Shown here: in pieces, positions 31,085-64,000 of the stretch
How positions within the stretch are numbered: position 1 is the first letter of the stretch
How the letters are laid out: each line of letters begins with the position of its first letter
Assembly: GCA_964035545.1 (NCBI GenBank)
Contig: OZ037767.1
Coordinates: 28,102,628-28,166,627, forward strand
Length of the DNA: 64,000 bases
Direction: 5' to 3'
DNA from: Bugula neritina
Lineage: Eukaryota > Animalia > Bryozoa
Notes under the pieces: model-generated
Databases searched by the model: none
Told to the model about the DNA's origin: nothing
The model's input: the letters and a program-made list of their open reading frames with translations, nothing else
Program-made: the position numbers and the translations under genes

Positions 31085-33979
31085 ATGTTTTGGCTAAAAT
31101 ATTCCGTTGTGTTTCTACTACACGTACAGTTATCTACACGTAAGTATATATTATAATATCAGACACTTACAATGATCTACAGGTAAGTATATATAACTTA
31201 GTTTTATGCTATTACATAAACTATAATTTATTAATTTTAAGAATACTCTAAAATACATACATCATACTATATATAATATTATAAACTATATTAAATACAA
31301 TATAATATACAATACTAACTTGTGCAATATCACGCATTAAACGATATTATATATAATGTTATACAATGCTATATTATAAAAGAATAATTAGGACTACAAT
31401 ATATCACGAATCTAGCAATTTTGGTATTTATGTTACTCTACAGTTTACTCCACATTGGAGACTACTGCATTGTACGTACTGTATATACTATAAGTACTGT
31501 ATATACTATAAGTACTGTATATACTATAAGTACTGTATATACTATAAGTACTGTATATACTATAAGTACTGTATATACTATAAGTACTGTATATACTATA
31601 AGTACTGTATATACTATAAGTACTGTATATACTATAAGTACTGTATATACTATAAGTACTGTATATACTATAAGTACTGTATATACTATAAGTACTGTAT
31701 ATACTATAAGTACTGTATATACCATAAGTTCTGTATATACTATAAGTTCTGTATATACTGTAATCTACTGTACGTGTATATACTGTGAATACAAGCACCC
31801 AGTATATTTACGAACCTGCGTTATTATATTCTATTACCTTTAATAGAGGCAAAAGGGATTAAGACAATTGTTTTACGAACTCAAATCTACACACCTAATA
31901 AAATTATCATCAGCTCTCTGTGGATTATTCTTTGTATGTGTAAGGATAGAGTTTATACTTGATGTACTTGTAACTAGAGATAACCTGGTGTTATACAGTA
32001 ATATACATAATCTACTCTACACACCACACTATAGTCTACTCTACATATACATGCCCTGGTCTCTACTCTACACATACACACCTGCATTTAATGTTGGGGG
32101 GGGGGGGAGACTGAAAGCTGTGACCCCAGTTTAACAGCAGCAGTTAGAGTCTGAGACAGCATCGTACATGTACAAATTGATACATGGAGTTTAAATGGAA
32201 AAGGTTAAAATATTCAACAGGCACTCCAAAATCATAACAATTTATGTGAATAAATTACTATTCAATAGTTGAATAGAAAATAATTAATAATACAATTAAT
32301 TTAATTACTGGTTACAAAGGCGGACATTTTACTATTAATATTTAAATGTTTAATGAATTATCTGATGAAGCAATTCCAACGTAGCATAGCTTTTATAGTA
32401 GATGATGGGTGAGCTAATTTATTTAAATGTCATTTTCATTGCCGATTCCATAAAAGTTGACATTAGATAATTATTATGGTTACAGAATTCTACGCAAACC
32501 TTTGTTTTAACCGAAAGAGAACCCTGGACTGCTCCATGCAGGGCGCACCATTTGCCAATGGAGAGATGTCTGTTCTCTCAGTTACTATACTACTCAGCAC
32601 TGATGCCAGCAAACTACAGGCTAACAACAATGGCAAAACCTGCACTAACGTAGAGTTTGAGTGTAGAGCTACAGTGAGAGGTGGGCTATTTATAGATTAT
32701 ACCATACATTACAAGGTACCATATTCATAGATTATACTATAGAATGTAACTAATAACATACAAACTTGTTGCTGTTATTTCCATGGGAGACAACTGATGA
32801 AACGAAAGTTAAACTACGTAGAGTATTGAAGGGGTATAATTTATGACTCAAATCATTATCACTGCATTTTTCATGCCAGAAGACAAGATGGATAGAAGCA
32901 ATACAGAGGAGCCTAGATTTTTAGAAAGTAAAACATATAATTACATTTCAGCATTTACAACACCACACATGGCTGTACTAACTATATTTCTGTTTTCAGA
33001 AAGCCAAAGAGCTGATTTTGATGCAGGCATGCTAGCAGTGAACGATTACATTAAAAGAACATGTGATGGTAAAAGTTCTTGCTTCTTGGAGATTCCAAAC
33101 TGGACAGCAGTGAATGGAACAGCAGCTGAGTGTGCTAAATGGTTTCCTGGCGAAATATTTCACTTGAGGGGAGTTTATTTGGATATTGGTTGCAGCTTAC
33201 GTAAGTAGTCATGGCAACTGAATGCTAACTCCTGACTACACAACTAAACTGCAGGTTGCTAAAAGCTTCTTGAAGTAATAGAACTTCCAAAATAAATTTT
33301 CAACAAAGAAGGCTGAGGAAAACAAAGCTAATACTGCATGAGAGAAAAAGTGTAAAATGTGACCCACGTGAATAGAAGACAGATAAAGTAGTAGTTTGAG
33401 GAATCTTACAACAGAAAATGAGAATAAATTTGTTTAGTGTGGGAGTTGCATCACCATGACAACACTTATATGTTATGATAATATTATGTATTTTTGTAGC
33501 AATAGAGGAAGGCACCACAACTACTGTACAGGCAGTAAACCTCACAGAAAACACGAACTCAAGTGGCATGATAAATGATACTGTAACAGAGAACAATATT
33601 GAGACAACAACTCCCACAAGTATGTATGTTTAGTTATATAAGAAGTCATGCGTATGATATTCAAGTGACCAAACCATTTGTTATGCAGCCCATAACTTAT
33701 ATAGACAATAAATCTTAAAATATGCTACCGGCTACTACTAACCTTTGATATCTTTTTGGCATTACTGGATATACTAAACAAGGTAAGACAATTTCCATCA
33801 TATTGGTCAGGGTAAAGCAAACCTAATGGTATGTTATTTTAGAGAAAGGAAGTTTATTGAAATGGCCAAAGAAACGCCCAACACTACATGCAGAAAATAA
33901 TATGAATGGCTCAGCAACTGGAATCAGCAATGCAATATTATTATTTTGGAGTTATGTCCTCCTGACTCACTTGTATTAG
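31085..33979 (+). CDS. Nested gene 1: signal peptide + SUEL-like 8-Cys domain + mucin stalk + GPI-signal-like C-terminus
   Basis: Exons 31085-31139 (MFWLKYSVVFLLHVQLST), 32486-32680 (4 Cys), 33000-33200 (YIKRTCDGKSSC...ECAKW...LDIGC), 33500-33619 (Thr/Asn-rich) and 33843-33979 (...NGSATGISNAILLFWSYVLLTHLY*). All GT-AG, phase 1, with an open frame. The terminal exon is less certain; alternative at 34948-35114. Confidence 0.7.
31476..31760. repeat. 18 bp minisatellite, ~16 copies
   Basis: Unit gtactgtatatactataa, near-perfect; lies in intron 1 of nested gene 1. Confidence 0.95.
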
Positions 33980-35552
33980 CCAAGTAAGAGGAATTACCAA
34001 CAGCAACTTCCCAATGCATTGGAAGGAGAAGATAAAAGGGAACTTCTGTACGTGTTACATAAACATCTCTAAAGCTGGGCAGTTAACCATGAGAGCCAAG
34101 TATACAAGGTCAAAGGTCACATATATGAATATGAACTAAAATGCAGATTGTGATATGTACTTTTTTATAAACAACAAGATTACACTTATTTATTATGATT
34201 CTGTACTGGTTTCAACTAAGGTGGTAGCAAGAGATAAATACATTAACATAACATATTATGTAATAATTTATAATAAAATTAATGATTAGTGATTAAGTAT
34301 AGTATATTGCAGACCATTACTCTGATCTAGGAAATAAAGTTAGTGATGAGTAAGTACTAAGTACAAATAGGAAAGCTAATAAATCAGAAGGTAAATGAAG
34401 CAATAAATATAACAGAGACATATCTGTAAGTCACACTAAATTAGGCTGGGGAGTAGAGGGTAACAGATATGTTGAGAGACACAAGCAATATGCAGCATCA
34501 CCTTGAAAGGGAACAGCTAGCTTACTATAACGAATCTACTGTAAAATGGGGAGGGCATTTCACATTATAGGTTACACCATTTGCTTAGCATCCTCCCTGC
34601 TAGGTGAGTTGCGAAATCATAATTTATATTTGTAATAACTCTTAGATTAATCAAAAGTTCAATCAATTTAATATATTTTCTGCTGCAGCCCTACATGGTA
34701 GCCATATTTGATTTAATGTTTACTGCAGGCTATTCTGATAAAATCATTCCTGCTTAGTAGATAAACATCTGTAATAGCTTTTATAGCAAGTATTTCTTGA
34801 AAGTAATAGCCATTGCAAGTTGGAGTGATATAGCCTACGGCTATTTGGTACAGGCTCTTTAGCACACATGCTATTTAACACACAAGTTACTAGTATAATG
34901 CATGCTATTTAGGTATACAATCATTATTATAAGTTCTTCTCAAACAGCTGTAGAATCTTTCACAACTGAATGGCGAACAGCTGGCCCAGACAGAGTAAAT
35001 GATGTCCAAACTAGCACAAAGAGCTCTACACAGCCAAAGCTCGTCACACAAACACCGGAGAAACCGAGTTCTCCATCAAGAGATAGCACAACTCATGAGG
35101 ATGGGAATAACTAGGGCCATAATATACTTAGAACACCAGTATTGGTTGTTTGCTATTTGCTACTATTGTTAGCAAGCTTACTATATTAATATAATATTGT
35201 TATTAAAATATTAGGATCGTTGATATAGCTAGTGCCTTATTCACACTTTCATTGTGCTGTACACGTCAATGTTATATATTAAATAGACTACAGAAAGAAG
35301 CTTATAATAGCATCATATAATTAATAAATCAAATAATCCCCTATAACTTTATTGTTCTCAAAAATAATGGTATAAATAAAATTGTGTAGTGAAAGACTGA
35401 TCATTTTTCAATAGATATTGGAAAGACAACTCCACGTAAAAAGTGCACCATTACTGTATGCAGTATAGTTGATGGATTAACTGATTATATAAAGTTTTAA
35501 TAAATAGCCACAACAACCAATAGGACTTCTTAAAATAATACACACTAGTCAC

Positions 35553-35695
35553 ATGTTTACTAGAGTATATACAATATGTTTACTAGAGTATATACAATAT
35601 GTTTACTAGAGTATATACAATATGTTTACTAGAGTATATACAATATGTTTACTAGAGTATATACAATATGTTTACTAGAGTATATACAATATGTT
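35553..35695. repeat. 23 bp tandem repeat, ~6 copies
   Basis: Unit atgtttactagagtatatacaat. Confidence 0.9.
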
Positions 35696-35988
35696 CGTCA
35701 TGAAATTAGGTTCCCAAGCAAACATAATAGAGTCTGTCTCACCTAACTCTAGATATGTCTTTCCCTTAGCTAAAATAGTGCTAGATGCTACATGCAATAG
35801 TACTGTCTTTTTTAAATTGAACTCCGTATATACAAGAATATTCTAAATAAGTAAACGCTTTCTTGACAGTTATTTTGAATAATTCACATTTCAAATATTG
35901 TAGCTCTTACACACACTACTTGCTAGAGAAGAATTTAATAATCTATTCAATGACTTATTTTCCTTAGAAATAGTTTTTGCTAAATGAG

Positions 35989-36339
35989 TTAGCCTAGGGC
36001 CACACGGTGCGTATTTTCGCATGCGAAAATTGAAATCACAAGTAGCAAAGGTGTCCACTGTAGCGTCAGTGATGCGTGATAAATAAAGCTTTCATTTTTA
36101 AATCGCACTCCGCTTTCAATAAAACGCAATTTACTGGAATGTAGCACTAAAATGAAGAAATTGGGCTCGCTGAATAACTACCAGCCAATTAGGTGACGAC
36201 GACAGAGACGATTCGCACTTGCGTTGAAAATGCAGAGCGACAAGTGCGAAGGTTTTCTCAACGCGCACAGTGGACACCTTTGCTACTTGTGATTTCAATT
36301 TTCGCATGCGAAAATACGCACAGTGTGGCCCTAGGCTAA
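35989..36339. mobile_element. MITE / non-autonomous DNA transposon with ~73 bp terminal inverted repeats
   Basis: 35989-36061 (ttagcctagggccacacggtgcgtattttcgcatgcgaaaattg...gtgtccactgt) is the reverse complement of 36267-36339 with one mismatch; no ORF inside. Confidence 0.88.
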
Positions 36340-36419
36340 ATGAAAAAAGGGGGTAACTCTAAAAAATCTCCGCAAAGAATATTTTTAATGGTAGCACTGA
36401 TTTCCAGTCCCACACAGTA

Positions 36420-36930
36420 CATTTATTCAGTAACTATTTATTCACATATATATTATGGCTATTGCCAGATAAACGCATCTTCAGGGCAGTGTGCCCAAGC
36501 ATATTGGTTTTATAACATATTTTGTGCATACATGTCTTGAATTAATTGGGATAATGACTCACATGCTAATGTTTTCTGTTAGCCTCAGGCACTATAAAAC
36601 TGATGCTCATTGCTGATTTTCATTGCATGCTATTTTTTGCTGTATCACTCAAATTAATCACTAAGCTGGCTTGAATGTTTAGGCCACAGGCTATACATGC
36701 TGCTAAGTGAGAAAACAAATGTTACAGATATCAAAAGCAAGTTACAGCATTAAATAGTCTCAAAAAACGTCATCAACAAATGAACCATCAACCCCAATTA
36801 ATTCAAAACATGTATGCACTAAAAAGATTATAAAATTAACACTCCTGAGCATGGTATCCTGAAGTTGTCTTTAGCTGATAGCTGAGGTATATGTGAATAA
36901 TTTAATACTACATTAATACAATGTGCCTGG
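36420..36930. mobile_element. Old degenerate inverted-repeat (foldback/MITE) element
   Basis: tattcacatata (~36439) pairs with tatatgtgaata (~36888); gtgcatacatgtcttgaattaattggg (~36524-36550) pairs with cccaattaattcaaaacatgtatgcac (~36793-36819). Boundaries approximate. Confidence 0.6.
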
Positions 36931-37305
36931 AATCCTTATTGTAGGATATACAAATATAACTTTGGTATAACACTAACACAACTTTTAATTAACTATTATT
37001 ACCATGAATAGACGTGGTAAACCAAGAAGGTGAAGGTGAAATGGATTTCCTCAAGTGTACAGACACCATCTATCCCCATGGGATTAGGGTTAGGGATAAG
37101 ACAGTAGAATTACAGATTAAAGAGATAGATAGGTGTATAAGATGGTACAGCATCATCTCTTAGCATTTAATTGCATTACATAAATTATACTGAGTATTCT
37201 AGAAGGATATGCGCTTGTCACCTCAATATGTGTAGCGCAGCTATATCATTCTCAGTTGAATATATCAGAGTAATTCCGTAAAATAATAATATCACTCCCA
37301 ACTAC

Positions 37306-37647
37306 AGCCTAAGGCCAATCTATATAACCTAAGACCAACCTATATAACCCAAGACCAACCTATATAACCCAAGGCCAATCTATAATATAACCCAAGACCA
37401 ACCTATAATATAACCCAAGACCAACCTATATAACCCAAGACCAATCTATATAACCTAAGACCAACCTATATAACCCAAGACCAACCTATATAACCCAAGG
37501 CCAATCTATAATATAACCCAAGACCAACCTATAATATAACCCAAGACCAACCTATATACCCCAAGACCAACCTATATAACCCAAGACCAACCTATATAAC
37601 CCAAGACCAACCTATATAACCCAAGACCAATCTATATAACCCAAGAC
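37306..37647. repeat. 20 bp minisatellite with 25 bp variants
   Basis: Unit taacccaagaccaacctata. Confidence 0.92.
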
Positions 37648-38045
37648 TATAGCAGAGTTCCATTTGCCAATGCTGGTAATACAGTAGTCAGTACCTGCTA
37701 TCACATGGCACAAGCTGTTGTATCAAACAGTAAGTGTGGAATCACAACTTCCTCAGAGTGAGTAAATAGTTTCAGTGTGTACTAATTGTACTACTTAAAC
37801 TGAGTAAACAAGTTGTTTTGCTTACAAAGCAGGTTATAGCAATCATCACAGAATGTGAAATATCCTTAAACTATGGCCTATACTGCTAGGAATTTATTAT
37901 TGTATACTGCAATATTAAGTCAACTATTACAGTATATAATACAGTGTATAATACAGTGTATCATACAGTATATAATACAGTGTATATATATAATACAGTA
38001 CATATTACAGTATATAATACAGTGTATAATACAGACATATTAGAG

Positions 38046-39139
38046 TAGGGGTGGGGGGGGGGCACAACGGTCATAGGGGTACAAAAAGCAGGTCAAATTG
38101 TGAGAGAACTTATTGACTTAGAGTTGTGATTTTTTTCATAAAAAGGTAATGACATAAATATTCAGCCATTGTAGTTTCAACACTTGCGGAGCATACGTGT
38201 TGAAGAGGCGGATCAAAAACTGTTTTTACCTACTTTTTGTAAATTTTTTAAGATGTCTTTAAAGCTTTATAACTTTTTACACGCAAGGGTAACAAGCTGA
38301 GATTTTGCTGATATTGTTGCCACTGCTTGTCTGTACATTGCTTAACTAGTATAACAGCAAACTCTAAAATAAATTTTCCTTGAGCCACATTTATTTTCAA
38401 CTTGGCCACACGGGGCACAATGGGCCACCTGATCCTTGCACCCTGATCACTATTATTAGTTTGTTTGCCCAAAAAGTTAAATGAAATATTAATAAAATCT
38501 ATAGATATAGCCATTTCTGACCTTTTTGTAAAGTATCAAAGACATCATGGTAAGACTACCAAACTACAAGGTGAAGCTCCCCTAATATATACATTTGATG
38601 AGGTTATAGCCATTTTATACATTATACAAAACACTCTGCTGTTGCTACTAATGGATAGTCATGATATTCATTATACATTATATCATTCAGGGAATATACA
38701 TGTATTTGACTAAAATAAATGCTGATTTGCACATTTCCTTCCCCTCCGCACTCCAGTCACAAACCTCAGCCACCTTAGCTACAGTTCATAGAAAAAAGTC
38801 CACTAGGAATTTTGTAGTAAATGTTACTAAAGTTTTTTTCTGATGAGAGTTTATGTGAAGTGAAAATAGAAAAACATCTTTAGTTCTAAACAGTAATGAA
38901 AATGCCACCCAGTGGCCCATTGTACCCTGGTACTGGGGCACAATTGGCTGATTTTTTCTTCATGAAAATTTCATGATTCTGAAAGTTGTGAGAGAGATAG
39001 AAACAACAAACTAGTACCTGTAATAGACAACAGATGCAGCATTAAGACTAGAGATTGTTGAACTAGTAACTTGAAAAACAGACGAATGAGAGCAAAAAAT
39101 GCAAATATCGGGCCATTGTGCCCTCCCCCCTTACCCCTA
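38046..39139. mobile_element. Non-autonomous Tc1/mariner-pogo-like element (~1.1 kb) with TA flanks
   Basis: Left end TA-ggggtggggggggggcacaacggtc and right end gggccattgtgccctcccccc-ttacccc-TA are imperfect inverted repeats. The motif ggggcacaatgggcca recurs internally (~38412, ~38935, inverted ~38913). It is inserted into a (tacagtatata)-type low-complexity tract. Superfamily is inferred from the TA flanks only. Confidence 0.72.
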
Positions 39140-39274
39140 TATGATGCAGTATATTATACAGTATATAATACAGTGTATAACACAGTATATATTACAGTAT
39201 ATGATGCATTATATAATATAGTCCACAATACAGTATATATTACAGTATATATACTGTATTATACAGTACTATAT

Positions 39275-39898
39275 AGCCCACCACTAACATACATACAGTA
39301 CTACTTAGCCCACCACTAACATACACACAGTACTATTTAGCCCACCACTAACATACATACAGTACTATTTAGCCCACCACTAACATACACACAGTACTAT
39401 TTAGCCCACCACTAACATACATACTGCAGTACTATTTAGCCCACCACTAACATACACACAGTACTATTTAGCCCACCACTAACATACATACAGTACTATT
39501 TAGTCCACCACTAACATACATACAGTACTATTTAGCCCACCACTAACATACATACAGTACTATTTAGCCCACCACTAACATACATACAGTAATATTTAGC
39601 CCACCACTAACATACATACAGTACTATTTAGCCCACCACTAACATACATACAGTACTATTTAGCCCACCACTAACATACATACAGTACTATTTAGCCCAC
39701 CACTAACATACATACAGTACTATTTAGCCCACCACTAACATACATACAGTACTATTTAGCCCACCACTAACATACATACAGTACTATTTAGCCCACCACT
39801 AACATACATACAGTACTATTTAGCCCACCACTAACATACATACAGTACTATTTAGCCCACCACTAACTACATACAGTACTATTTAGCCCACCACTAAC
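39275..39898. repeat. 32 bp minisatellite, ~19 copies
   Basis: Unit gcccaccactaacatacatacagtactattta, no spacers. Confidence 0.95.
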
Positions 39899-42618
39899 TG
39901 TTGCCTTATACATTAATCATGTATACTCCAAATTAATCATTCACTGGCAATTATTGTGGTAAGACATCAAGATATAACATATTATTATGTTATAGCTTGG
40001 TGTTTAGAACTTTTTACAATGTAGCACTTTCATTATCCTATACATTGTATGTAAAGCATATTGTGGGTAGAGTTTGATGCAGGTAGCATATACTGTTATA
40101 GGTAGAGTATATTGTACGTAGAATATGATACAGGTAATTTTCATTCTATAGACTATAGAGTATAGACCTTCAAAAGGAAATATATAAAACCAAACTTGAG
40201 AGATGCAGTTTACATTTAGGCTCCATGTTTACCTACAAAACAAGGCCCTGGGCTACTTAGTAGTGAGTTGTTCAAACTTTACACAAATGGGGACAATGAA
40301 AGACTTAACAACAACTTTATTTACTGTACATAGAATGCAGTATCTATATTGCGTCATAACTTTGTGAATCAAGAGGGACTAAAAACAGCTGCTGAAACAT
40401 TTTTATATCAACTTGATAATTATTCACAGCTATGTTTTCAATTTACTATAATATAATTGGCTTGCGTATGACTGACTAATCTCGGAATGCAAACAGCCAC
40501 AACTATTTATAATTTATTAATTTGAATTGCCTGGCAATATAGAGCTATCAATCAGTTAGTGCACCACTGTCACTGTGATAACTTGAGATTACATTCTGAT
40601 CTGTTCTACTGAGAGTTGGACTTCTAGACTGCTACATACTGACTCTGAGTAAGTCTAACTGAATATATGTACTTCAAGGTGAAGTTACATTGTCACTAAT
40701 ATGAATAAATTTATATTTAAATTTTGATGCGAATAATTATTTGAATGTAGCATCAGAATATCTGGCTTGAGTGCTGTTAGGATATGCCTATGGATTAGGT
40801 TATTCCGAGAGAAATGTGTGTCTGTTATTTCAAATAACTCAACAATAATAGCTCTAGTCTTGTACAAAGATATCACTTTTCACCATACTCGTTTCCAACT
40901 GCTGGTTTTCAAATTCTGTTGAGAAAGCAACTGCTATATTTACTGCGGGGCAGTAGAAAAACCTGAACAAATGCAAAAGTTTCAAATAACGAATTTGCAG
41001 TACCTTTTCAAGACACTAAGTAGGTAAGTGTTGTTGAGGCAAGTAAAACGAGAATAATTTCTACAAATATGAAATTGTCTACCTAAATCCAAAACATAGA
41101 TAAAGAAAATTTCAACAAGCAGTAAGGAGCATTTTTGCTAATAGCTTAAAAAGTTATTTGCCCTTAAAATCAATTAAACTTGTTGAACTACTAATTAAAA
41201 ATCCAAGACACAAAAATATGCATTTCAATTCTTAATAGATTGTTCAGCGGTAGAAGGCATCATTTTTTCCAAAACTGCAAGAATCGATGAAATTAATGAA
41301 GAAATTATTGCAGTTTGTAGAAATCTTACAAGTCAGCACTTATTTCTGTCCTGTATAGCAAAAGGAAATATGTCACATGCATATATCAGCTGTAGAATAC
41401 AGAGTTACAGATTTTTGCTTAGCTTGTGTTTATAGATTCTGATTGGAAGCCTAATTACTTTCTGGAAGGTTACAAAGTTTCTTTAGTTCTAAGGCTATAA
41501 AATAGACTGCAATTCTACACTGACCTCCAAAATATGAGTACATGCAGAAAACATGTGTTTAATAAATATCAAAGAAAATTACAACATAAGAGAGATGGTC
41601 TATTCTTTGCCTTCATTAAAAATTCAGCTAAGCATTATAGAATTGATAGTTGCTTGTCATGGACGGTCTAAAAAAACAATGAGATGTGAGGAGAAAGACT
41701 AGGCTTTGAAAAGTTTTAATTGGATTAGAAATTCTAAAGCATGAAAGTAGATAATGCAGAGGTTTGAACTAGAGAACTAAGGCTATAGGCAGTTATTTAG
41801 CAAATTGCAAGTCATGTCATGTTTGACACAAACCTAACCAAGAATAATTAGAGTAGCAGGCTTCATTAGCTAGCCAAGTGTGGTTACTAATACATCTCGG
41901 CATGTGCCTAATGGAGGCAAGTAGTTGTGGTTCTTTTACCATAGCTTGTGTTCTCTAGAGGGAAGATGTTATCACCCACCCACACTGATATATAAATTTG
42001 AAAACAAAATTAAGTAAACCTATCACGGAATAACTCCATAGGTGAGCAACAAAAAATAATTTGGCAACTGGTTTCTTTTACATTCAGCATTTGGGCGAAA
42101 CCCAAATTGTTTTCCTGCCTATATATTTGGTCGTGTACAGCCATGAGGAGCTTGTCAAGGTGAAAGTTATGAGTAGAACATGGTTGTTCGCCTGCAAGAC
42201 ACCAGTGGATGACGTGTGGATGCTATTATAAATAACCACAGCTCTACATCTCAGTATCATTTCTAAGCTCACATCTTAGTGGTCAGTCAACCGTGGCTGG
42301 TTGATTGAATGATATGTTGATACACACAGGATATAATTAGTATAGAGAAGTTGATGAGTGAGTGAGGTTAGAAAGAAAGGAGCTAGTAGGTTGAACATAG
42401 CCAGGGTTTCACTAGTGATGTAGCTGTGCTCTGCGGGTTTAGACTAAATATAGTATAACACAGTGTAGGCAGCAATCTTACACAGTAGAGTACAGAGGTT
42501 TATACTTTCTATGATTATATTCTTCAGCTAAACTTTATCAGGACTAACAGATTAACTTAAGACTAATATCTGGACAACAAGAGAGGAACATAGCCTCAGA
42601 TCTATCAAAGGACTGATG

Positions 42619-49265: not shown

Positions 49266-49338
49266 TGCCCCGAGTGAGGATCGAACTCACGACCTTCAGA
49301 TTATGAGACTGACGCGCTGCCTACTGCGCTATCGAGGC
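49266..49338 (-). tRNA. tRNA-Met (CAT), elongator type
   Basis: Reverse complement GCCTCGATAGCGCAGTAGGCAGCGCGTCAGTCTCATAATCTGAAGGTCGTGAGTTCGATCCTCACTCGGGGCA: 73 nt cloverleaf, anticodon loop CT-CAT-AA, GTTCGA T-loop, and a T-run Pol III terminator immediately downstream. Confidence 0.96.
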
Positions 49339-51165: not shown

Positions 51166-51179
51166 ATCGTCATAGCAAC
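51166..51179 (+). promoter_or_regulatory. RFX X-box candidate upstream of nested gene 3
   Basis: ATCGTCATAGCAAC matches RTHNYYWTRRNRAC, ~180 bp before ATG 51356. Confidence 0.42.
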
Positions 51180-51355
51180 CAAGGAAATATTTTGGCTCAG
51201 TCACAAAGTGGAAATGCATTAGATATAACAGACTTGGTGGAGTAGAAGAGAAAGTGGAAGTGCATTTTGCAGAAGGAGTACAGAAGGGTTTAGAGGTTTG
51301 GTGAATGAGGGAAGGGAAAGTGTATTAAAGAAAACTTGAGAATACTTGAGAAGAA

Positions 51356-54300
51356 ATGGAGATACTCAACATAATTATATTACTAAGCAGTGTCTGCTAC
51401 AGTCACACATGTAAGTATGGAATATATGTTGGTATATCAGAATAATATTGTATGGCGGACATCATCTTAAAGAAACCAGTAATTAGCAAAGAATTACATC
51501 TGCTGTAATTGAAAACAGCAAACAACAAGGTGTGTAACACTAAAGAACCCTGCTACAAGCACAACATCCATTTTTAGGTGTATAAAGTAACAATTCAATG
51601 TAATATTATATTATTTTGAACTAGTGTATATTACCAAAAGAAGGCTTCAATAATATAATATAATAATTGGGAAATAAACGGGAAAATTATATTGCAGGTC
51701 ATATCCAGATGACATCTAAACAGAAATAATTTATGAGATTTATTTGTGCAAGAATTGTTTAATTACAAATTTTTCAATCTTTTTAAAATTAAATAGACAG
51801 TTGAAACATTTTAGCTCCAAATTTTCTATTAAATTTCTGCTTCTGACATTCAGTATAAAACTGAAACTGAAACGTTTATTGCAAATTTTGATAGCTGTTT
51901 ATATGACAATCCTCTCTCCATCCATCCCACCTGCTCCCCCCCCCCCTCTACTTATTACACCTGCAGCATTCATGTCATCCTGCAGCCTGAAATATTTAAC
52001 TGAGGTAAGAATAAAATTGTGGAAAAATGATAAAATTAACTGCACATTAAAACATCCAACAATGTTTTGATAGTTTAATAAAATTCTTGTAGAAAGATAA
52101 TATAGAGCTGCAGTTAATTCTTAAGTTTACTGAAAAAGGCATTCGTGATTTGACATTTAAACTACACAATTTCTTTTCCCCATCATTAACTTACAGTAAA
52201 AATATTCAACTTACAAGTCAATTATTTTAATTTGTGTCTTGCGTAGATGATTTGAGCACTGGCCAATGTCACAGATAAGAAACTGTAGCTTTAGACTTCA
52301 GTGCCAAGTGAAGACAACTTTGGCAACTTTCCAAAGCCACAGTACTTGAAACAAAACAGGGATAAATAAGTTGGGCTCCAAAGTTGAAAGTAGGTTGTGA
52401 GATGTGTCGGCTTAAATTATACAGCTTGCGAATGCTACATGGGTACACCCTGGATAAGCTAGAATACATAAAAACTCTTAAGAAAGCCTTAAGGAACGGC
52501 ATTACTGAGACAGCATAGAATAGAATATCTTGTACGAACAAAACTTGGTGATTATCAAAGAAAACCTGCAGAAAATAGAAATACAATTAAGGAAGTAACT
52601 ATAAACTGTAAGTTGTAAGAGAAAGATCTGATAATGAAATAAGACATAGTTTAGGCTAATCTTGTCACACTCATAAGTTAGCAATTTATTGACTACTTTG
52701 GGTGTGAGTCATCAGCACATATAAACCGTAAACTGTGCCGCAAAATAGGAGATGAATCAGAGAACATGCAGAGGCTATAGCTTGAGTTCTAAGATAGTAA
52801 CTTATTGTGCTATTGAGAGGTGTGAGCAATGGTGCCCCTTGTTCTTTTGCAGCCTTCAGAATTAGGGTTGATCATAAATCTGCACTCTAAGCTAGATCTG
52901 TGTTAGGAAAGTTCTAAAAATCTAAAGAATAATACAAAAGAGAAAGCTATGCTAAAATCAAAGAACCCAGGCTAAAGCTGAATTGGAAAACAACTATTTC
53001 TGTTAAAAAACATTTTAAACCGAAAAACAATAAAAAAGAAATGTTATGAGCTATTTTTGTAGTCTAGTCAGACTAGATAATGATGCGTAACATTTTATCC
53101 AGAGTTGAAAACAACTTTAAGTGTGTTTGAGAAATAATTATCCCCTGCTGGAATTTAAATTGCTGGTTGATATTTTGCAAGTTGGATAATCATAACCATA
53201 AGTCAAAATTGTGCAGAAGGGCTGTTTACGAGTAGATATAGCAAAACAAACCTAGATATACACTCATGTAGAGAAACTTCGCACCAATTTTTGTGAATAT
53301 ATATGGAAAACAACTCTTAATCTAGCGTAAATATATTCTAGGTTAATAAAAAAATTAATGTTTATCTAATGATTACCATATACTACATATATTTGCTTGA
53401 GTCTTTATACTAATAAATTAAAAATATGTTGAAAACACATTTGGCTACTTTATATCTTAAAATACCTATGCCTTCCTACCATTAAAAATATTTATGGCAT
53501 TTTATAGTTACAATATCATTTGCTGTTTTGTAGTTGAAATTGCAACTAACTTCCTGTCAGCTTGTTCCGGAAGAAACATCAACACAGAGGAAACAAGATG
53601 CCCGACAAGCTCCATAATTAAACTCAAATCTGTAACAATCTACGCATCACCCGACTCGACAGCAATAGAGGCAGCAGATAAACAGTGTCTTCAAGTCTCC
53701 CAATGCAAGAGAGTCATTCACAGTGAGTGGAGTGTCTAGCAGACATAGTCAGTAAGGTGTCACACAGTAGGGTATCACACAGTAGGGTATCACACAGTAG
53801 AATATCACACAGTAGGATATCACACAGTAAAGTGTCACACAGTAAGGTATCACACAGTAGGGTATCACACAATAGGGTATCACACAGTAGGGTATCACAC
53901 AGTAGGATATCACACAGTAGGATATCACACAGTAAGGTGTTACACAATAGGGTATCACACAGTAAGGTGTCACACAGTAGGGTATCACACAGTAGGGTAT
54001 CACACAGTAGGATATCACACAGTAAAGTGTCACACAGTAAGGTATCACACAGTAGGGTATCACACAGTAGGGTATCACACAGTAAGGTATCACACAGTAG
54101 GGTACCACACAGTAGGGTATCACACAAAAAGGGTATCACACAGTAAGGTGTCACACAGTAAGGTATCACACAGTACGGTATCACACAGTAAGGTATCACA
54201 TAGTAGAGTACCACACAGTAAGGTGTCACACAGTAGGGTATCACACAGTAAGGTGTCACACAGTAGGGTATCACACAGTAGAGTACCACACAGTAAGGTA

Positions 54301-57300
54301 TCACACAGTAGGGTATCACACAGTAAGGTGTCACACAGTACGGTATCACACAGTAAAGTGTCACACAGTAGGGTATCACACAGTAGGGTATCACACAGTA
54401 GGGTATCACACAGTAGGGTATCATACAGTAAAGTGTCACACAGTAGGGTATCACACAGTAAGGTGTCACACAGTAGGGTATCGCACAGTAAGGTGTCACA
54501 CAGTAAGGTATCACATTATAGTTGAGCCATCATTTTCAGGTTTTAACTAAAGGTAGTTTTAGTCATGTGTGTATAGTATACAGGAAATGCTAAACAAGTT
54601 AGAATTTGAGAAAACAACTCCTAATGTTAGGACAATGCTATTACAGTGTGCTGTTGAAGACCAATTGTAAGTGACAATGATATTATGGTAACAATGATAT
54701 ATTGATTTAATTTCTCTTCACCAAAAAATACAAATATTGCTCTTCACATTTTTTTAATATAAGCTATTGCATTACAGTTACCATTACCAGTGAACTATTG
54801 TGCATTCACCTAATTGAGAATTACTTGATATATAGAATTGATTTTACATTAAAATGGGAGTTGTATACCCAAAATAGCTTCCTAGCAAGAATGGACAACT
54901 CTCAAAAACTCCCAAAGTCGATATTCTGAATTAAATACAAAGCACAGTGAAAACAACAACTTCTTTATAATATTTCATATTCAATTTTAACATGTCTTAT
55001 ACTTATAAAGATTTCATTTGCAATATGCTTTGGCAGATGCCCGTGATTTTGGCTTATCTAAAGAATATCAACATCTATTTGCCTGGTTCCAAAACAAATG
55101 CGAAGGTAAGAATGTATGTGATGGTGGAATGCTGCCGTTATGGTGGGCGCTGACGGGAAATATCAAGGACGACGCTGGGCCATCCAGGAAATGCCCCGAA
55201 ATTGGCACTAAATATTTTACAGGAGTGTACGTGCATCTGGATTGCTTACGTAAGTGATATAACTTCAGCCTCTAACCAAAAACAATCTTCAATTAGGTAT
55301 GCAAATGAATTCAGCGGCTGGAGCTGGTGCATGGAATGGTGCCAAAGTAGCATATTTCTTCATCAATAATCTTATACTGAACTCACTATGGAATAGATTA
55401 GATCGCACTTTGAATGTATAGCTACAGATTCCATGATGCATTTTGATAGTTGGAGAGGAGGTAAACACGGTGCCCCCACCACCTGATACGACACCTAAAA
55501 CTAGGCCTACTACTCCTACTTCCACTACAGCCTTCCCTGTGTTCATACCAATATACCAGCCGTACCTGGAAGGACGAGAGAGTGAGTGGAGCATTAGTTC
55601 CTTTTAGTAACCTCTTTTCCAACCCTCAATTAACTAATACGGACATGTAGTGGAGCCCTTCTATGGTCCCCCTCCATGGTCCACACAGCGACACTTAAAC
55701 AATGCTATTATCCCACCACAATCCATCCTAATCCCAAGATTAGCTTGACTAATCATTACATATGAAAGAAATTCAAGTCCAAAATCCAACGGCTTTAAGA
55801 TCATAAACATGACAAATGTTTGCCGTGAAACCCATCTCACTGCTGACACTTTTATAAAACTGTCAATAAAGATGGGAGGCTAAGAATTTAATAGTCCTTT
55901 ACCTAAATGAAACCAGTGATGTAATATAATTATTTAAAATATAGAAAATGCAAATAGTATTCATTTGATTAGCATCCACGGTTTAGATTGTCATGAATTA
56001 AGCAGTGGACAGTAAATTGGTGTCGCAATAAGAAACTTTGCAAATATTAAACTATACATTATATGTATGCTGATACATTTGCTATGCATCGTAAGAGCAG
56101 GTTTTTACTAGAAGAAATACATATCCCTGCCACGTAATATAAAACATCTTGGCCACCTTTTAAAGGATATTTGCTACTGCAAAATACAAATTATGTTTAT
56201 CTCAATTCATACTTAACTAACTAATGCTCCGATACTAGTGCTCTGACTATATAAACTATATTATATAAAGTGCATATAATATATAATTTCAAACAGAGAT
56301 CATCCTGGCAGTGGCTATAGGGCTAGCCATAGCCATACTCATAGTGCTGCTCATTGTCCTCTACTGCTGTGAGAGATACAGAAATCACAAGAACTTCCTG
56401 AAGCTGTTGAGGTCTCTGGGAGCGCCACAAGCTCAGGACAACTACGATGATGACTACAGTAAGACTGAGACATGGACCAATGAGCCCATTAGTAAGTGTA
56501 CATGACACATCAATGTAAATTATTAGCAAGTATGAAGACATCAATAAAAACTGTCATCGGCTGCTTGGGTAGAATAGATTTCAATGACTGCTCTATATGA
56601 CACTAAGGTGCAGTAATGGAGAAATTAAGAAAAACCTATGTTCTAGATTAAAGATGTAGCAAAAGAAGTTATGTTCTCGCAAAAATTTCAATCCGGACCC
56701 CAAACCAAAATTTTATAAAGAAGTTTAAAGAACTTAGGCTATCTCAATTTCTCCACCACTGCTCCTAAGTGCTATAAGTTCCTTACTAAAGACTGCTTGT
56801 GAGATTGCTTTACATCTGAGTTGCAAGGTTACAATGAAGTCAAACTGCTTGGTCTCCCTTTGATCCCTCAAACTAAACGAAGACATCATTGTAGATCCGG
56901 ATGCTCTGGGAGAGTACACCGGAGTGAAACCAGACGAGTTCCTGACCATGACGAAGCAGACGATGGAGAACAGCGGACAGATAATGTATGAGTCAGCAAT
57001 AGGCAGCATGACTACTGGCAGAAGAAACAGCTGCTCCACACTCAACAGAAATAGTAGTTATGGGGGGTATAGCAGCCACCCGCATGTGGAGTCAGGATAT
57101 GTGAATAGAGCAATGGCTTACGATTCTGGTGAGTACAAGAGTATTTATATAAATGCTGATACCTTCAGACACTTTAGTGGAATACAGGCTACTTTTGGCC
57201 ATTACCATTTCTAGAAAACTATTGACAATTTAAACATGCAACTTTCATACAAATTTAATGATGGCTGGAGAAACAAATGAGTCCTTAGAAATGAGAAGCC

Positions 57301-58831
57301 CAAATAAGCTGTCACAGTCCTTAGAAAATACATATTCACATAATCCTATATGATTTACTCCAAGCTCAAATTTGAAATTAACGCACAAAAACCTTCCCTC
57401 TGTTCTTATTAATTACCCAAATGTTTGCAAACCAGAAATGTCTTGTGCTACAAATTTCGCTGTCTAAATGTGTCAGCCATTTTGATGCCGTTTTCCTTCA
57501 ATAGCTGTGTTTTCTCGTAAACATCTCAATATGAACCAACCTTCACTCTGTTTAGCCTGTAATCTCAAGCTTTTAATCAGCTCTGCAAGCAAACTATACA
57601 CGAATGTTAAAACTCTTTTGAACTATAAAATTAGCAGTCAAATTTTAGTGCTTTATAAGCACATCTGACTATACCAAGATTGCTCGCTGATAGTTTACTA
57701 GAAACAGTTGATACATAGATCAGAAAAGTGTCAAAAATCTCATGTCAAGAGTCTCTATAATATAATATAGCTTAGCAAGTTGAACTTAGATTTCTAGACT
57801 AACGAGTATGAAAATATCCCACAGGAACGGAACAACCCTTCATTAAGATAAATGTCTACATGCCTGTCAATTATAATACTCTATAACAAAGTCAAGTCTA
57901 CCTATATCTGCTCCAGTTTCTCTCTTTAAAACCATGAAGTGAGATCTTGCAGGCAATATAATTGAGTAATTTGCTATTTATTAGTCAATTTAGATTACAC
58001 TCTGCAGTCTACAATATAGGACCTATGAATAATTCTAACATAATAGCCATAAGGAACCCTCAGAGAAACTATTTCATTGGTTGCAACAAATATAATATGA
58101 AATTGTAAGCAAAGGCATGAGCTATTTAGGGTATTGAAGTGGCTTGAAAGTTTACCATAGTCACTTCCTACCTAACCCATGCACTTGAGTTAATATGACT
58201 GAAAACAACTGCAAAAATGTACAATAAATATACAAGTGAGATTTCCTTGCAGCCAATCAGAATTAGGTATGTTAATAGTAGAAAACCAGGTTTTTCGCTA
58301 ATTTTAGAGGAAAACTTGGATCTAGAGGAAAGAATGGCGGCTACTTTGAACGTCCATGATGAGACAGAGGAGGAGGATGGGGTGAGTGAGTCAGAAGATG
58401 CAGGCGAGTATGTAGAGAGAGCAGACGGATATGAAGAGAGAGCAGAAGGATATGTAGAGAGAGCAGACGGATATGAAGAGAGAGCAGAAGGATATGTAGA
58501 GAGAGCAGAAGGATATGTAGAGAGAGCAGACGGATATGAAGAGAGAGCAGAAGGATATGTAGAGAGAGCAGACGGATATGAAGAGAGAGCAGACGGATAT
58601 GAAGAGAGAGCAGAAGGATATGAAGAAAGAGCAGATAAATCCGATGACAAGGTAGATGAGTACGATGACAAGGTAGATGAGTACGATGACTTCCACGAGG
58701 AATATTCTGACGACACTTTCACGTCGTTATCAGATGAAATCTGGCAGTCCATTTCCACGCCAACCATGAGTGGAGATCAGCAGATCCAGGAGATGGCAAG
58801 AGAACTGGAACCGAAGACTGACATTTCATAA
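51356..58831 (+). CDS. Nested gene 3: type I membrane protein with SUEL-like domain, Pro/Thr stalk, TM and long acidic Tyr-repeat tail
   Basis: Exons 51356-51410 (MEILNIIILLSSVCYSHT), 53534-53722, 55037-55249 (NKCEGKNVC...RKCPEIGTKYF...LDC), 55450-55581, 56297-56491 (TM + YCC), 56895-57128 and 58308-58831 (heptad repeats, stop). All GT-AG, phase 1; paralogous to gene 4 exon for exon. The last exon is less certain. Confidence 0.82.
53750..54515. repeat. 15 bp minisatellite, ~50 copies
   Basis: Unit cacacagtagggtat with variants; lies in the intron splitting the Cys domain of nested gene 3. Confidence 0.95.
58409..58639 (+). repeat. Coding 21 bp repeat x11 (Y[E/V]ERA[D/E]G)
   Basis: 231 nt = 11 x 21 nt, in frame within ORF 58217-58831. 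Confidence 0.9.
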
Positions 58832-59738
58832 AGTAGAGCCCAACTAATGAAACACCATGTTTCTATATTGAACATGAACACAGACAGCACAGAAACAATG
58901 CGACAGCCACTCAACTCAATGGTGTCTGGTCAACAGTCCCTGTAGAATTCCTGCATCAAGTTATGTAATACAGAGTCTAAGAAGTTTATAATTATGGCTC
59001 TTCGTGACCTACAATATGCTTGGCAAAATTGAAACAGAATCAATAACCATTAGGCACAAATTAGATGCTATTATACACTGGAAATAGTGACTGTCAGCAT
59101 ATATGCTTGAGCTCTGGTGGTACTAACTTGTATACAATTTCAAATTACTGTATACGTATATTAAATCAGTATAAGTATTTTTCATAGTTCTATTAGACTA
59201 CAAGTAAGTTACTTTAAGTTGATGAGGTTGTGTTATAATCTTTGTAGTATAGTAACTTACTGCAACACCGTAACAGTTGTTTACTTACTCTTAGTTATAT
59301 GTTATAATATGTAAACTTATTTTACTTGATACCTCTGAAGGAGCTTGCTTGCACTTACTAATTTTATTGTTTAACAAAATCAACGGTTGGGTAAGTAATG
59401 AAAACTTGCATATGATTTAAGATATAAATGTAACATTAACATAGCCATAATTACTGTTACGGATGTTATGCTCTAAAGTTTATGTTACATTATTTAAGTG
59501 TATATAACATCATAGTATTTATTATCATGGTCCTTATAAGATCAAATAAACTCCACGTCTACCCTGATTAATTACTTTTACGTGAATTACTGAAAAAGAA
59601 CTATGAATTATGTAGCTATAGAACCAGTTGGGTTTATCACTACTGCAAATCTTGAACTGCAGGAAACAGGTAAAGCCTATACACACACTAGCATTACAAT
59701 ACTGGAACATAATAGTGTATGTCATAGAAAAAAGTGAC

Positions 59739-59752
59739 GTTTCCATGGCGAC
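59739..59752 (+). promoter_or_regulatory. RFX X-box candidate upstream of nested gene 4
   Basis: GTTTCCATGGCGAC matches the RTHNYYWTRRNRAC consensus exactly, ~230 bp before ATG 59985; it overlaps TGACGT. Confidence 0.5.
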
Positions 59753-59984
59753 GAAAATTTATGAATTCACTGCTTAAGGATAGATTGGTTATCGTAATTC
59801 TATGTGCAGGAGATTTAGTGTAGACACACTCCAGTTCGTGGCTGAAATATCTACGGCTAGGGTGTGGTTCACTTGTACAACTAATTTACTTAATTTACAT
59901 CTTCGACCTGATTTAAATTAGCCAGACTTGGATTATATAATAAACTGTATGCATGCATCGTACCAAACAGTTGTGTAACAGATC

Positions 59985-62900
59985 ATGGCGTGTAAAATAA
60001 TGCTGACCGCTGCCGGATTACTCATCACCCTGTCCATTGACCCTACAGAGTCGTGTAAGTATTGTAGCACTTCATCTAAACCTAACCTTAGAGTTATTGT
60101 ATATAACGAAACTCAAGAAAGTAACACCCTGTGTTTTGACAATCCGCGTGAGCTCCCAGTCTAACTAAGCAATTATATTGACAGACTTGCTGTGAGCATG
60201 TATTTCTATCTGGATGCTGAGATTATATAAGATTATTAGATACGAGATAAAATTGCATGTCACAACAATTCCCACTTTTCTGACATATTCTATTGTATTT
60301 GCTGCCACATTTTATTGTATTTGCTGCCACATTTTATTGTATTTTCTGACATATTCTATTGTATAACTATTGAATTGTTGTTGCGCAGTTGTGACTGGAG
60401 GGTTCAACTTAGTGGGCTGCCAAGGCAAGAACATACGGCAGCAGAAGTGCGGTGCAAGCAGCGCAGTGTATAACGTACAGTCTATTACCGTGCTCACCTC
60501 CTCTGATGTCAACTACATTAAAAATATTTCCAAGATAAGTAACAGGTGCCAGGTGGCAGAGCAGTGCAGAAGAACTATTCATAGTAAGTACCAGCGCAGC
60601 CCTAAAGTTTGCAGATCAACACAAGTGAGGAATTAGCTAACATGCTTGGCACGTGAATACAACTTTGTGTGCTGTTTCTTGAAGTAAACCCACCAATAGG
60701 TGTAAGGTTAAACTTGAAAAGTCTCTCAATACCTGACTAACTAAGGGTTCAAAACTCCTATTTTCATAAGTTGAGTTAGGGGGGGATAACTAATGACAGA
60801 AGTAGGGGTGGGCGTAGTGTAGCCCCAAACAATAGGCACTCATTTTATAAGATATAAATCTGTAGAGTATAATAACTCTTCATCAGAAATGTGCATCAGA
60901 TCTTGTAAGACTAAATTGAATTTGCAGAGTTGTGGTAGTCTTAGGAAAGCAATGTTTCAGTTGTCTTAGTGTTCATGGTACAGAAGGCTAATAGAATGAA
61001 TATAGAGACTTCCATTTGTGGGTGTAACACTACGTCTAGTAGTAGGTATTATAGTACGATATCTAGAAGAAATTACACTATTAAATATATCTAATACTAA
61101 AACATGAAAAATATACTTTGTAAAAAACTTATCAATAGACTTAAAAAAATACAAAATGCTTATATAATAAAAAGTATAACACTATATATAATGATATTAT
61201 TGTAATAGAACTAGTAAAGTATAGCAATAGACAGCGTATAACCCAAACTATCATAAATTAATTTAGTAAGAAGAATAGCAAACTATTGAGTAGAAAGTAT
61301 AAAATAGTAGAAGTAGTACTGCATGGGCACAAATTAACAACTGGCATTTAATTTGTGGAAAGAGAAACTACACAATATTCTCATAGGTGCGGGAGACTCA
61401 GGACTATCAGAGGAGTACCGCCATCTATTCAACTGGATACTTCACAAGTGTAACGGTAAGAAAACATGTGATGCAAACGCAACTATGCCAGAGTGGTGGA
61501 GAATAGCAGAAGACGATACTAACTGTGGAAATGGAAGAATACAACACATAGTAGGAGCTATAATAGACGTCCAGTGCAGAGGTGAGTACATGTCACATGT
61601 GGTTACTGCCTCACATACTTCACAATGACAACATATCTAAATCCGACAGCTATATCAAAGTTCAAGTATATGACTTTAGAAATTGTCTTCTCATGAACCA
61701 TAAAATGAGGTGGTCGGTACGTTGTGATTGGCCAGAGCATCCTATATCCACACACAAGTTTATCTACGGATATTGATCTCCATCCAGGTATGCAGTACTA
61801 GGTTATAACAATCTAATGCACCTTTACAGTTGGAGAAACAATACCCACATTCCTACCGCCAATAGACACAACTCCAAAGACCAGACCAACTACACCGACA
61901 ACAACCACGCCATTTCCTGTGTATGTGGATGTATACATGCCTGGACTGGAAGGGAGAGAGAGTAAGTAAACTCATTTAATGCTACTTGTGTGATCAATGA
62001 TATGTGTGATAGGACTATTGTCTGGCAGTGATGTAATACCAATAAACAATAAACCGTTCTATATTAGGAATATATAGATAAATTTTATAGCATTGTAACA
62101 AATTTTCTAAATCAATCTTAACAATCTGCCAAAAATACTCACTTGTAAATTTAAACTTTGCTGAAGTTCATAACGGTTTTTTGTGAAAACAAGAGATGAG
62201 AGAATGACTATGAGTATGTAAGAGAGCATGTAGAGGGGTGAATAAGAGCAGAGGGGGGCAGAAGGGTGGATAACAGCAGAGGAGATAGAGGGGTGGACAA
62301 AAATACACATGAAGAGAACTATGCTTGCAGCCCTCTGTTAGACCATAAGATTCAGACTCCTAGCTCTGTCTTTTCTAGACATTCTATAATCTACTTATAA
62401 TGAGAATATATATTAGCCCTTGCATAGCAATTAGTTCTGGAGATAGATTACATGAATGTAATAGATTTATACTAGCTACTAATCTGAATGTATAAAGATG
62501 TCATCCTTAATAGTCTTATCTCTAAAATCTCACTTAAAGTAAAGAATGTCTACTCAGTAATAAGATTAGAATACTAATACACAAGAGTTAGAGGATGTTG
62601 TCTTTACAGTTTATACAGACTCTGGTGACTCTCTGAATATGCAGAGACAGTAACTCACACAAGCTAGTACTGTCTATTCACTTAGCTCTAAATACTTGAA
62701 CTATGTAACTATTGATTAGTTGGAAAAATATGCAATTCACAAATTTAGGGAGTTATGTTGTCCTGGATTATGTTGCCTGTTGTGTTACTATCACCACATT
62801 TCCACCATTGCATTATGCCAATGGATTTGTGATTGCCTAATGGAAACTGTTACATCGAAGGAAATCACAACCATAAGTTAATGCAAACTGGGCATCCATT

Positions 62901-63908
62901 CGCATAATGACAGTCATGGAAACAGAGTGTATTTGCAGAGAGTGCAGTAGCTGATGGGAAATGAAAACAGCAGTTGATTGAGCACATTTACTTGTAGAGA
63001 TCATACTGGGAGTTGCGATAGCCTTGGCCATAGCAATACTAATATTCCTACTCATAGTGTTATACTGCTGCGAGAGTTACAGAAATCACAGGAAGTTTGC
63101 TAAGCTGCTGCGAATGCTGGGAGCCCCTCAAGCCCAAGACGACAATTTTGATGACTTTGAGGATTATGGGAAATCAGATGCATGGAGAGAGGAAACAGAT
63201 GCTAGTAAGTGCTTTTTGAAATACAGAAATAGAAATACTAACTGAATAATGGTGAATAGATGTCACATGAATTGTCTTTCCCTGGTAAATCTGCATTATT
63301 CGGGCCTTCAAACAGTAGATACAGTTTATATGGTCATAGAAATTACTCCAGTCAAATCGGAATAGATAGGAAAAGTAAAAACAGCTCAGTGAATTTGAGA
63401 AAATATAATACTACTTAGTCAACCTATTGTCTCTGGAAATGTCGTTTGTTAGAAGTTTACAAAATCTCAGACTAAGCCTACACCTGGCATGACATCACTG
63501 TGTCTATACACTGCGTAACTGTCAACTCCTAACATTATACACCACCATAATATTCTAAATGTTATTCTTTAGTGTGCAAAGTATGTCTGCTACACACACT
63601 ACCTCAACTCCCTTTTTAGATACTAAAATTACCTGTACAGAGAAATGTTTATGTATTCTTATTACTTAATACAGACTTCAAAGACTTAGGAGAGTACACT
63701 GGAGTCAAACCCAATGAGTTTCTAACCCTCGACAAGAAGGCCATGGAGAGTTCAGGGCAGATAATGTACGACACTCAGATGAGCACAATGACTACTGGCA
63801 GGGGAAACAGTTGCTCTACTATCAGTAGAAGCAGGATGTCTTCCCACCCCCCAACCAGTCCCATACACACCAACTATGGCTATAGTGAGGCACTAGACTA
63901 TGAGACGG
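59985..63908 (+). CDS. Nested gene 4: paralog of gene 3 (probably continues beyond the window)
   Basis: Exons 59985-60054 (MACKIMLTAAGLLITLSIDPTES), 60389-60583, 61387-61581 (HKCNGKKTC...TNC...VQC), 61830-61961 (DTTPKTRPTTPT...LEGRE), 62998-63204 (TM) and 63675-63908 (LGEYTGVKPNEFLT..., ending at a phase-1 GT donor, or read-through stop at 63911-63913). Confidence 0.83.
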
Positions 63909-64000
63909 GTTAGTTGCTTTCCTGCAATTCTACAAACTGTATTGACGTAATATATCATGTAAATACTTACTTAATTTGGATTTATCTTATCCCGTCTTAA

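Follow-up and report, generated by a model that had tools for sequence, protein, structure and literature searches.

A tandem array of genes for SUEL-like cell-surface proteins nested within an ASCC3 intron of the bryozoan Bugula neritina

We analyzed a 64,000-nucleotide stretch of chromosome 3 (C3) of the bryozoan Bugula neritina (C3:28102628-28166627, hereafter the window), in which a preliminary description had proposed a cluster of four same-strand genes for SUEL-like cell-surface proteins. Extending the search past position 64000, as had been suggested, uncovered four further members downstream, so that the four genes in the window are the first of eight arranged head-to-tail. All eight lie antisense within a single intron (67,341 nt, phase 2, GT-AG) of ASCC3, a gene for a DNA-repair helicase. 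Single exons and database proteins were used as search queries, spliced models were compared by script, and transmembrane (TM) segments and hydrophobic ends of the products were judged by hydropathy. For comparison we used a second B. neritina assembly (GCA_010799875.2) and the bryozoan Watersipora subatra (OY755166.1). We conclude that the cluster is real, that its nesting is conserved, and that it is apparently a lineage-specific form of a known type of receptor that has not been described before.

The exon plan originally proposed for genes 1-4 was confirmed. The spliced frames are open, the exons have AG/GT ends, and every intron is in phase 1. The signal exons are 55, 70, 55 and 70 nt long (73 nt in gene 2 if an upstream ATG is used), and exons 2 and 3 of each gene contribute four Cys each. 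The motif C-x-G-K-x-x-C of the third exon occurs four times in the window, always on the plus strand, compared with 0.5 expected in shuffled sequence; none of 100 shuffles reached four. The annotation of GCA_010799875.2 contains matching models for gene 1 (KAF6036680.1) and gene 4 (KAF6036676.1), the latter being the best protein match, with 5 residues that differ from gene 4 in the aligned exons.

The C-termini differ in the way first described. Gene 1 encodes no TM segment; its last 15 residues are hydrophobic (mean hydropathy 1.61), and the pattern, judged by eye and by hydropathy, resembles that of glycosylphosphatidylinositol (GPI)-anchored proteins, with a signal, small omega residues, a hydrophobic end and no tail. 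The Watersipora orthologue of gene 1 also has a hydrophobic C-terminal stretch. Gene 2 has a TM segment and a short tail, and genes 3 and 4 have a TM segment and a long tail. The exons given for genes 3 and 4 within the window stood, but their extents did not: a seventh exon of gene 3 had been missed, and position 63908 is a splice donor of gene 4 and not the end of the gene. The last exons of both genes are supported because each opens with the motif E-N-L-x-L-E-x-R-M-A, which is also present in genes 5, 7 and 8. The edges of exons 4 and 5 of gene 2 are uncertain, owing to a weak GTTGGC donor and a second possible acceptor.

Features of the locus (window numbering; ext, the same numbering carried on beyond 64000; C3, chromosome 3)
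Feature	Position	Strand	Description
ASCC3 large intron	C3:28199636 down to 28132296; window part 29669..64000	-	frame joins across
ASCC3 3' exons	25525..29668	-	encode the C-terminus and the second Sec63 unit; the corresponding exons of GCA_010799875.2 match Pfam Sec63
Gene 1	31085..33979	+	235 aa; signal, SUEL-like domain, Thr/Asn stalk, GPI-type hydrophobic end
Gene 1 exons	31085-31139, 32486-32680, 33000-33200, 33500-33619, 33843-33979	+	spliced model
Gene 2	42616..47138	+	~309 aa; Thr-rich stalk, TM, ~36-aa tail
Gene 2 exons	42616/42619-42688, 44774-44956, 45329-45535, 46214-46429, 46888-47138	+	spliced model
Gene 3	51356..58831	+	513 aa; TM and 292-aa tail, the latter yielded by the seventh exon
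Gene 3 exons	51356-51410, 53534-53722, 55037-55249, 55450-55581, 56297-56491, 56895-57128, 58308-58831	+	spliced model
Gene 3 exon 7 repeat	58406..58720	+	coding repeat in tandem, unit 21 nt; Tyr is the second residue in 14 of its 15 heptads
Gene 4	59985..63908, last exon ~240 nt past window end	+	369 aa; TM and long tail
Gene 4 exons in window	59985-60054, 60389-60583, 61387-61581, 61830-61961, 62998-63204, 63675-63908	+	spliced model
Gene 5	ext 71530-75.7k	+	candidate signal exon, two Cys exons, TM exon, open frames
Gene 6	ext 77712-82.0k	+	candidate signal exon, two Cys exons, TM exon; open frames; Thr stalk of ~410 residues, then a short tail that lacks Tyr
Gene 7	ext 82977-88.2k	+	candidate signal exon, two Cys exons, TM exon, open frames
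Gene 8	ext 89488-92.4k	+	candidate signal exon, two Cys exons, TM exon; open frames; 6 Cys; no clear stalk exon defined
CFAP47-like gene, 3' part	1-24909	+	convergent with ASCC3
MITE-like element	35987-36342		~350 nt; long terminal inverted repeats (by eye)
tRNA-Met (CAT)	49265-49339	-	between genes 2 and 3, within the ASCC3 intron

Matches to Sec63 were found on the minus strand on both flanks of the cluster. Using the genome's own SNRNP200 as a probe, we recovered ASCC3 exons in order from ext 114.5k to 97.0k and then from window position 29668. One open frame runs from ...VQNP on one side of the intron into T-Y-Y-E-L... on the other, with a GTAAGT donor and a TTACAG acceptor. The other mapped upstream exons are at most ~2.3 kb apart, compared with 67,341 nt for the intron that holds the array. 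The older B. neritina annotation cuts the 3' exons of ASCC3 into small separate genes, which hides the nesting. A literature search did not find a published account of genes nested in ASCC3. An intron of NF1 holds OMG, EVI2A and EVI2B, which are nested antisense and encode membrane glycoproteins, and the two cases are alike in having several such genes antisense in a large intron of a housekeeping host. In contrast to the array described here, which consists of tandem paralogues, the genes nested in NF1 are unrelated to one another.

In Watersipora, the stretch covered by the annotated minus-strand ASCC3 contains nine homologues, and no ASCC3 exons were detected in the sequence fetched (34.326-34.475 Mb, with one 10-kb gap). 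Their order is a gene-1 type, three gene-2 types, a gene-4 type, three more long-tail types and a gene-8 type. In the tree, gene 2 grouped with its three Watersipora co-orthologues with support of 100/99, and the Watersipora pairings were weaker for gene 1 (93/87) and gene 4 (84/84; XP_067947753.1, 62% identical). Genes 3 and 7 clustered together, and most deep forks were not resolved. Because the order is broadly kept and the nesting in ASCC3 is kept in Watersipora, the array and its host intron are older than the Bugula/Watersipora split, with some gains and losses afterwards.

A profile of the four exon-3 peptides, searched against 1.84 billion representatives, gave 41 matches, and full-length and tail searches gave an identical set. 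The named sources were Bugula, Watersipora and one snail; the rest were Logan, ENA and JGI fragments. We rejected the snail (Biomphalaria) match as spurious: it is a tandem-repeat protein matched over 14 short stretches, and the Cys motif is absent from the matched stretch. Thus, no credible homologue in a named non-bryozoan organism was found by profile, full-length or tail searches, and scans of metagenomes gave no matches. These searches support, without proving, a family restricted to bryozoans, in line with the lineage-specific family first suggested. We found no paper on bryozoan SUEL proteins or on this family, which agrees with its having been called undescribed. The assignment of a SUEL domain is itself not new: in UniRef, the product of gene 1 from the other B. 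neritina assembly is entered as a SUEL-type lectin domain-containing protein.

The ectodomain is predicted to adopt a SUEL-like fold, as had been expected. The AlphaFold2 model of the gene 4 ectodomain (from the database protein, with a 41-row alignment) had a mean predicted local distance difference test score (pLDDT) of 91.4 and a predicted TM-score (pTM) of 0.85. When it was compared with 48,161 chains, the six top-scoring structures were all SUEL or rhamnose-binding lectin (RBL) domains (SUL-I, latrophilin lectin domains, CSL3 and the SUEL domain of a plant beta-galactosidase), with modest Z scores of 5.5-6.0 and root-mean-square deviations of 3.0-3.9 Å over 83-91 residues. The next matches were Plasmodium P113 and RIPR, followed by unrelated folds at Z ≤ 4.2. 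Foldseek again ranked SUEL/RBL-type structures at the top, but with E ≥ 0.03, and structure searches of the Atlas gave TM-scores of 0.50-0.53 to SUEL-type models. Sequence searches gave no such assignment. Neither the single exons nor the full database proteins matched PF02140 above its 31.4-bit cut-off (best 12.9 bits, E 0.15); one Watersipora member came to E 0.041, still below the cut-off. A search of the genome with PF02140 matched other loci but not the cluster, and a search of PDB sequences with the ectodomain profile gave 0 matches at E 10.

The ectodomains are homologous to one another, and the cysteines provide independent evidence for this fold. Seven of the eight Bugula genes encode eight Cys. 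Gene 8 encodes six, and both it and its Watersipora counterpart XP_067947752.1 lack exactly Cys4 and Cys7. In the latrophilin RBL domain the disulfides are 1-3, 2-8, 4-7 and 5-6, with Cys4-Cys7 corresponding to Cys83-Cys115 (PMC2430599). The joint loss of Cys4 and Cys7 in gene 8 fits this pattern and indirectly supports the 4-7 pair. The cluster proteins share with SUEL/RBL domains (PF02140; SUL-I 5h4s, CSL3 2zx0) the predicted fold, the eight Cys, the C-x-G-K-x-x-C motif and the Cys1-Cys2 and Cys5-Cys6 spacings, and may share the Cys4-Cys7 bond. The remaining Cys spacings differ, and the cluster domain is larger (~130 aa with added helices, compared with ~95-100 aa). Also unlike SUEL/RBL proteins, each member of the cluster has one domain, a stalk and a membrane anchor, lacks YGR and DPC motifs, and falls below the Pfam cut-off.

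Two known receptor types are close in structure. Latrophilin (ADGRL) lectin domains (8djg, 6ska, 6vhh, 8suf) were among the top Foldseek and VIA matches, and in these structures the lectin domain touches proteins (teneurin, TOL-1); however, latrophilin has olfactomedin, GAIN and 7TM parts that the cluster proteins lack. EVA-1/EVA1C is a type I membrane protein whose SUEL ectodomain is without sugar-binding residues (PMC2430599), and EVA1C-type models in the Atlas matched with a TM-score of 0.53. It has two SUEL domains, whereas the cluster proteins have one, with an unrelated tail, and occur as eight tandem paralogues. No FAM176 match was found in the database proteins of the family, and sequence searches returned no EVA-1 among the homologues; orthology to EVA-1 is not supported, in line with the preliminary description, which recognized no orthologue.

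The residues that bind sugar in classical members have been lost. RBL domains bear YGR, DPC and KYL motifs (PMC10817417). In the latrophilin domain, three residues bind rhamnose: a Glu at position Cys1+1, the YGR Tyr and the KYL Lys. The Glu and the Lys are each required; with E42Q the Kd goes up from 1.8 mM to 141 mM, and with K120R binding is lost. The authors of that study argue that RBL domains attached to receptors have ligands other than carbohydrates (PMC2430599). Among the 16 ectodomains of the family, YGR and DPC were found in none (0/16 each). A KY[LF]-like sequence, a KYF remnant, is at the expected place in three Bugula genes. Only one of the 16 has the Glu at Cys1+1, and that one lacks the Lys, so the two residues never occur together. 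Genes 4, 6, 7 and 8 have Gln at Cys1+1, the equivalent of the change that causes an ~80-fold loss of affinity in latrophilin. Because YGR and DPC are absent and the Glu and Lys never coincide, the family appears to be a SUEL-fold derivative unlike a classical rhamnose lectin and, by sequence criteria, outside that functional class. "Lectin" in the sugar-binding sense is thus a doubtful name for these proteins. Canonical SUEL domains with YGR, DPC and KYL exist elsewhere in the genome (C4:10.59 Mb; C3:21.46 Mb); their internal intron follows Cys3, and that of the cluster family follows Cys4.

We compared the two B. neritina assemblies to estimate selection. They are 83-91% identical across the locus, with a synonymous divergence (dS) of ~0.17, which is consistent with the cryptic species known in B. 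neritina. Over 582 codons of ectodomain (genes 1, 3, 4, 5 (exon 3) and 6) there were 66 synonymous and 14 nonsynonymous differences, giving a ratio of nonsynonymous to synonymous divergence (dN/dS) of 0.06 at a dS of 0.19. The ratio was 0.05 for tail exon 6, 0.06 for ASCC3 and 0.08 for CFAP47 (Fisher P 0.84), and gene 1 was more relaxed outside the domain (0.22 overall). The ectodomains are under strong purifying selection. The ratio of 0.06 therefore indicates that the genes are functional, and it speaks against diversifying selection.

The long-tailed members have several tail motifs in common, and these are kept across species: a juxtamembrane Cys-Cys, G-E-Y-T-G-V-K-P-[DN]-E-F, S-C-S-T and E-N-L-E-L-E-R-R-M-A. 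In a single-sequence fold the tail was disordered (pLDDT 51), with the E-N-L-E-L-E-R-R-M-A segment predicted to be helical. The tail had no match in Pfam or the Atlas, and its sequence matches were bryozoan only. Y-T-G-V fits a Y-x-x-hydrophobic sorting motif or an SH2 motif and might act as either. In a JGI contig of 962 nt, counterparts of exons 4-7 follow one another without introns, suggesting that a related species produces a spliced transcript. The heptads of gene 3 read G-Y-[EV]-E-R-A-[DE] eleven times and then continue as acidic variants. Tyr is retained unit by unit as the neighboring residues vary, and the array may serve for phosphorylation, though it is recent and variable. As a conserved signaling module it was rejected: the array is in no paralogue, and in GCA_010799875.2 it has 9 heptads with 8 Tyr. 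In that assembly a 1-nt indel near the end of exon 7 alters the last residues, and could be a real variant or an assembly error.

How these proteins function can be proposed from the properties described above. To our knowledge, cell-surface signaling in bryozoans is almost unstudied. In the reading we favor, to which we give about an even chance, these are conserved contact receptors that bind fixed protein partners. A bryozoan family of single-domain SUEL-fold surface proteins would have expanded in tandem within the ASCC3 intron before Bugula and Watersipora separated, with slow turnover since. Every member would carry a single enlarged SUEL-like domain, held out on a stalk that can be O-glycosylated, and each paralogue would bind a fixed endogenous protein partner at cell-cell or zooid-zooid contacts, by analogy with the SUEL domains of latrophilin and EVA-1. 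The long-tailed members could signal, or be trafficked, via short conserved motifs in the disordered tail, and the GPI and short-tailed members could be adhesion partners or co-receptors. We favor this reading because the SUEL fold is predicted, the canonical sugar site is lost, selection is purifying, order and nesting are conserved, and the tail motifs are conserved. Several points weigh against it. The structural Z scores are all below 8 and so modest, though their ranking is uniform; the test of selection compared two assemblies, with a single haplotype for each, and covered only genes 1, 3, 4, 5 (exon 3) and 6; the identity among the eight Bugula ectodomains (17-45%) fits any recognition role; and the remodeled loops may leave room for a new glycan site.

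The family offers a small, defined and conserved receptor set in which roles in colony development, in settlement or in the recognition of symbionts can be probed. It is also a case of a lectin fold remade with its sugar site gone, and of a tandem array held in one intron of an essential helicase gene in two bryozoan families. In a version of the contact-receptor proposal that we consider rather unlikely, the SUEL-derived receptors, eight or nine in number, would have a new surface for binding proteins and a new conserved tail module, and would form a bryozoan-specific combinatorial contact code, co-regulated within the ASCC3 intron, that patterns zooid budding, interzooidal contacts or colony self-recognition.

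The main alternative, unlikely in our view but the best placed of the rivals, is that these receptors serve in pattern recognition and sense microbes, settlement cues of biofilms or the bacterial symbiont via a rebuilt glycan site, with the paralogues directed at different conserved microbial ligands. Rhamnose-binding lectins bind bacterial lipopolysaccharide (PMC10817417), the conserved aromatics of exon 3 (Y/W-W) could stack on sugars, and purifying selection is compatible with conserved microbial ligands. However, the canonical site is gone in every member, canonical SUEL domains are present elsewhere in the genome, and there are eight copies only, with no large expansion.

The other alternatives are less likely than microbial recognition. 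An allorecognition or histocompatibility complex with receptor, co-receptor and decoy members, part of the immune, allorecognition or gamete role first envisaged, seems to us improbable. Bugula is colonial, and the cluster, like Hydractinia Alr and Botryllus fuhc/fester, contains clustered surface paralogues; they are single-pass, with Tyr-rich tails and a GPI form. The Alr genes, however, are Ig-like and highly polymorphic, whereas those described here are SUEL-like and under purifying selection, several of them with positional orthologues in Watersipora. Known allorecognition loci are clustered, but they are also exceptionally polymorphic (PMC3342096), unlike the ectodomains compared here. 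Moreover, the tails contain no immunoreceptor tyrosine-based activation motif and no conserved immunoreceptor tyrosine-based inhibition motif. The present evidence on the cluster does not open the question of bryozoan allorecognition. We attach a similarly small probability to structural parts of the glycocalyx, cuticle attachment or larval adhesive that do not signal. The mucin-like stalks, longest in gene 6, and the GPI form would suit such parts, but the tail motifs are more conserved than the ectodomain (68% and 56%, respectively, between gene 4 and its Watersipora orthologue), which therefore implies intracellular partners. Least probable are proteins for gamete or fertilization recognition: gamete surfaces typically bear GPI and TM forms, but in many cases proteins of this kind diverge quickly from one sibling species to the next, and the cluster genes do not. 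That eggs were the first source of SUEL lectins (PMC2430599) also counts in favor of this role.

Several other features were observed at the locus and at related sites. An extra copy of gene 4 at C3:12.98 Mb (12983-12989 kb) is an 86% identical genomic duplicate that keeps its introns; its exon 2 is frameshifted and its exon 3 contains a stop, so that it is a pseudogene. The three mucin-like genes around it begin with signal-like sequences and have Thr-Pro repeat frames that are 1000-2300 codons long. The element between genes 1 and 2 resembles a miniature inverted-repeat transposable element (MITE) and has a 96.6% identical copy in this pseudogene. Its site in the window is empty in GCA_010799875.2, which has a copy in intron 2 of gene 1; the differing sites between assemblies suggest recent mobility. 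Between genes 4 and 5 (C3 ~28167.4-28172.7 kb), a segment of ~5.2 kb with no long open reading frame is absent from GCA_010799875.2. The CFAP47-like gene ends ~600 nt from the end of ASCC3, and Ig_CFAP47 was matched on its counterpart in GCA_010799875.2.

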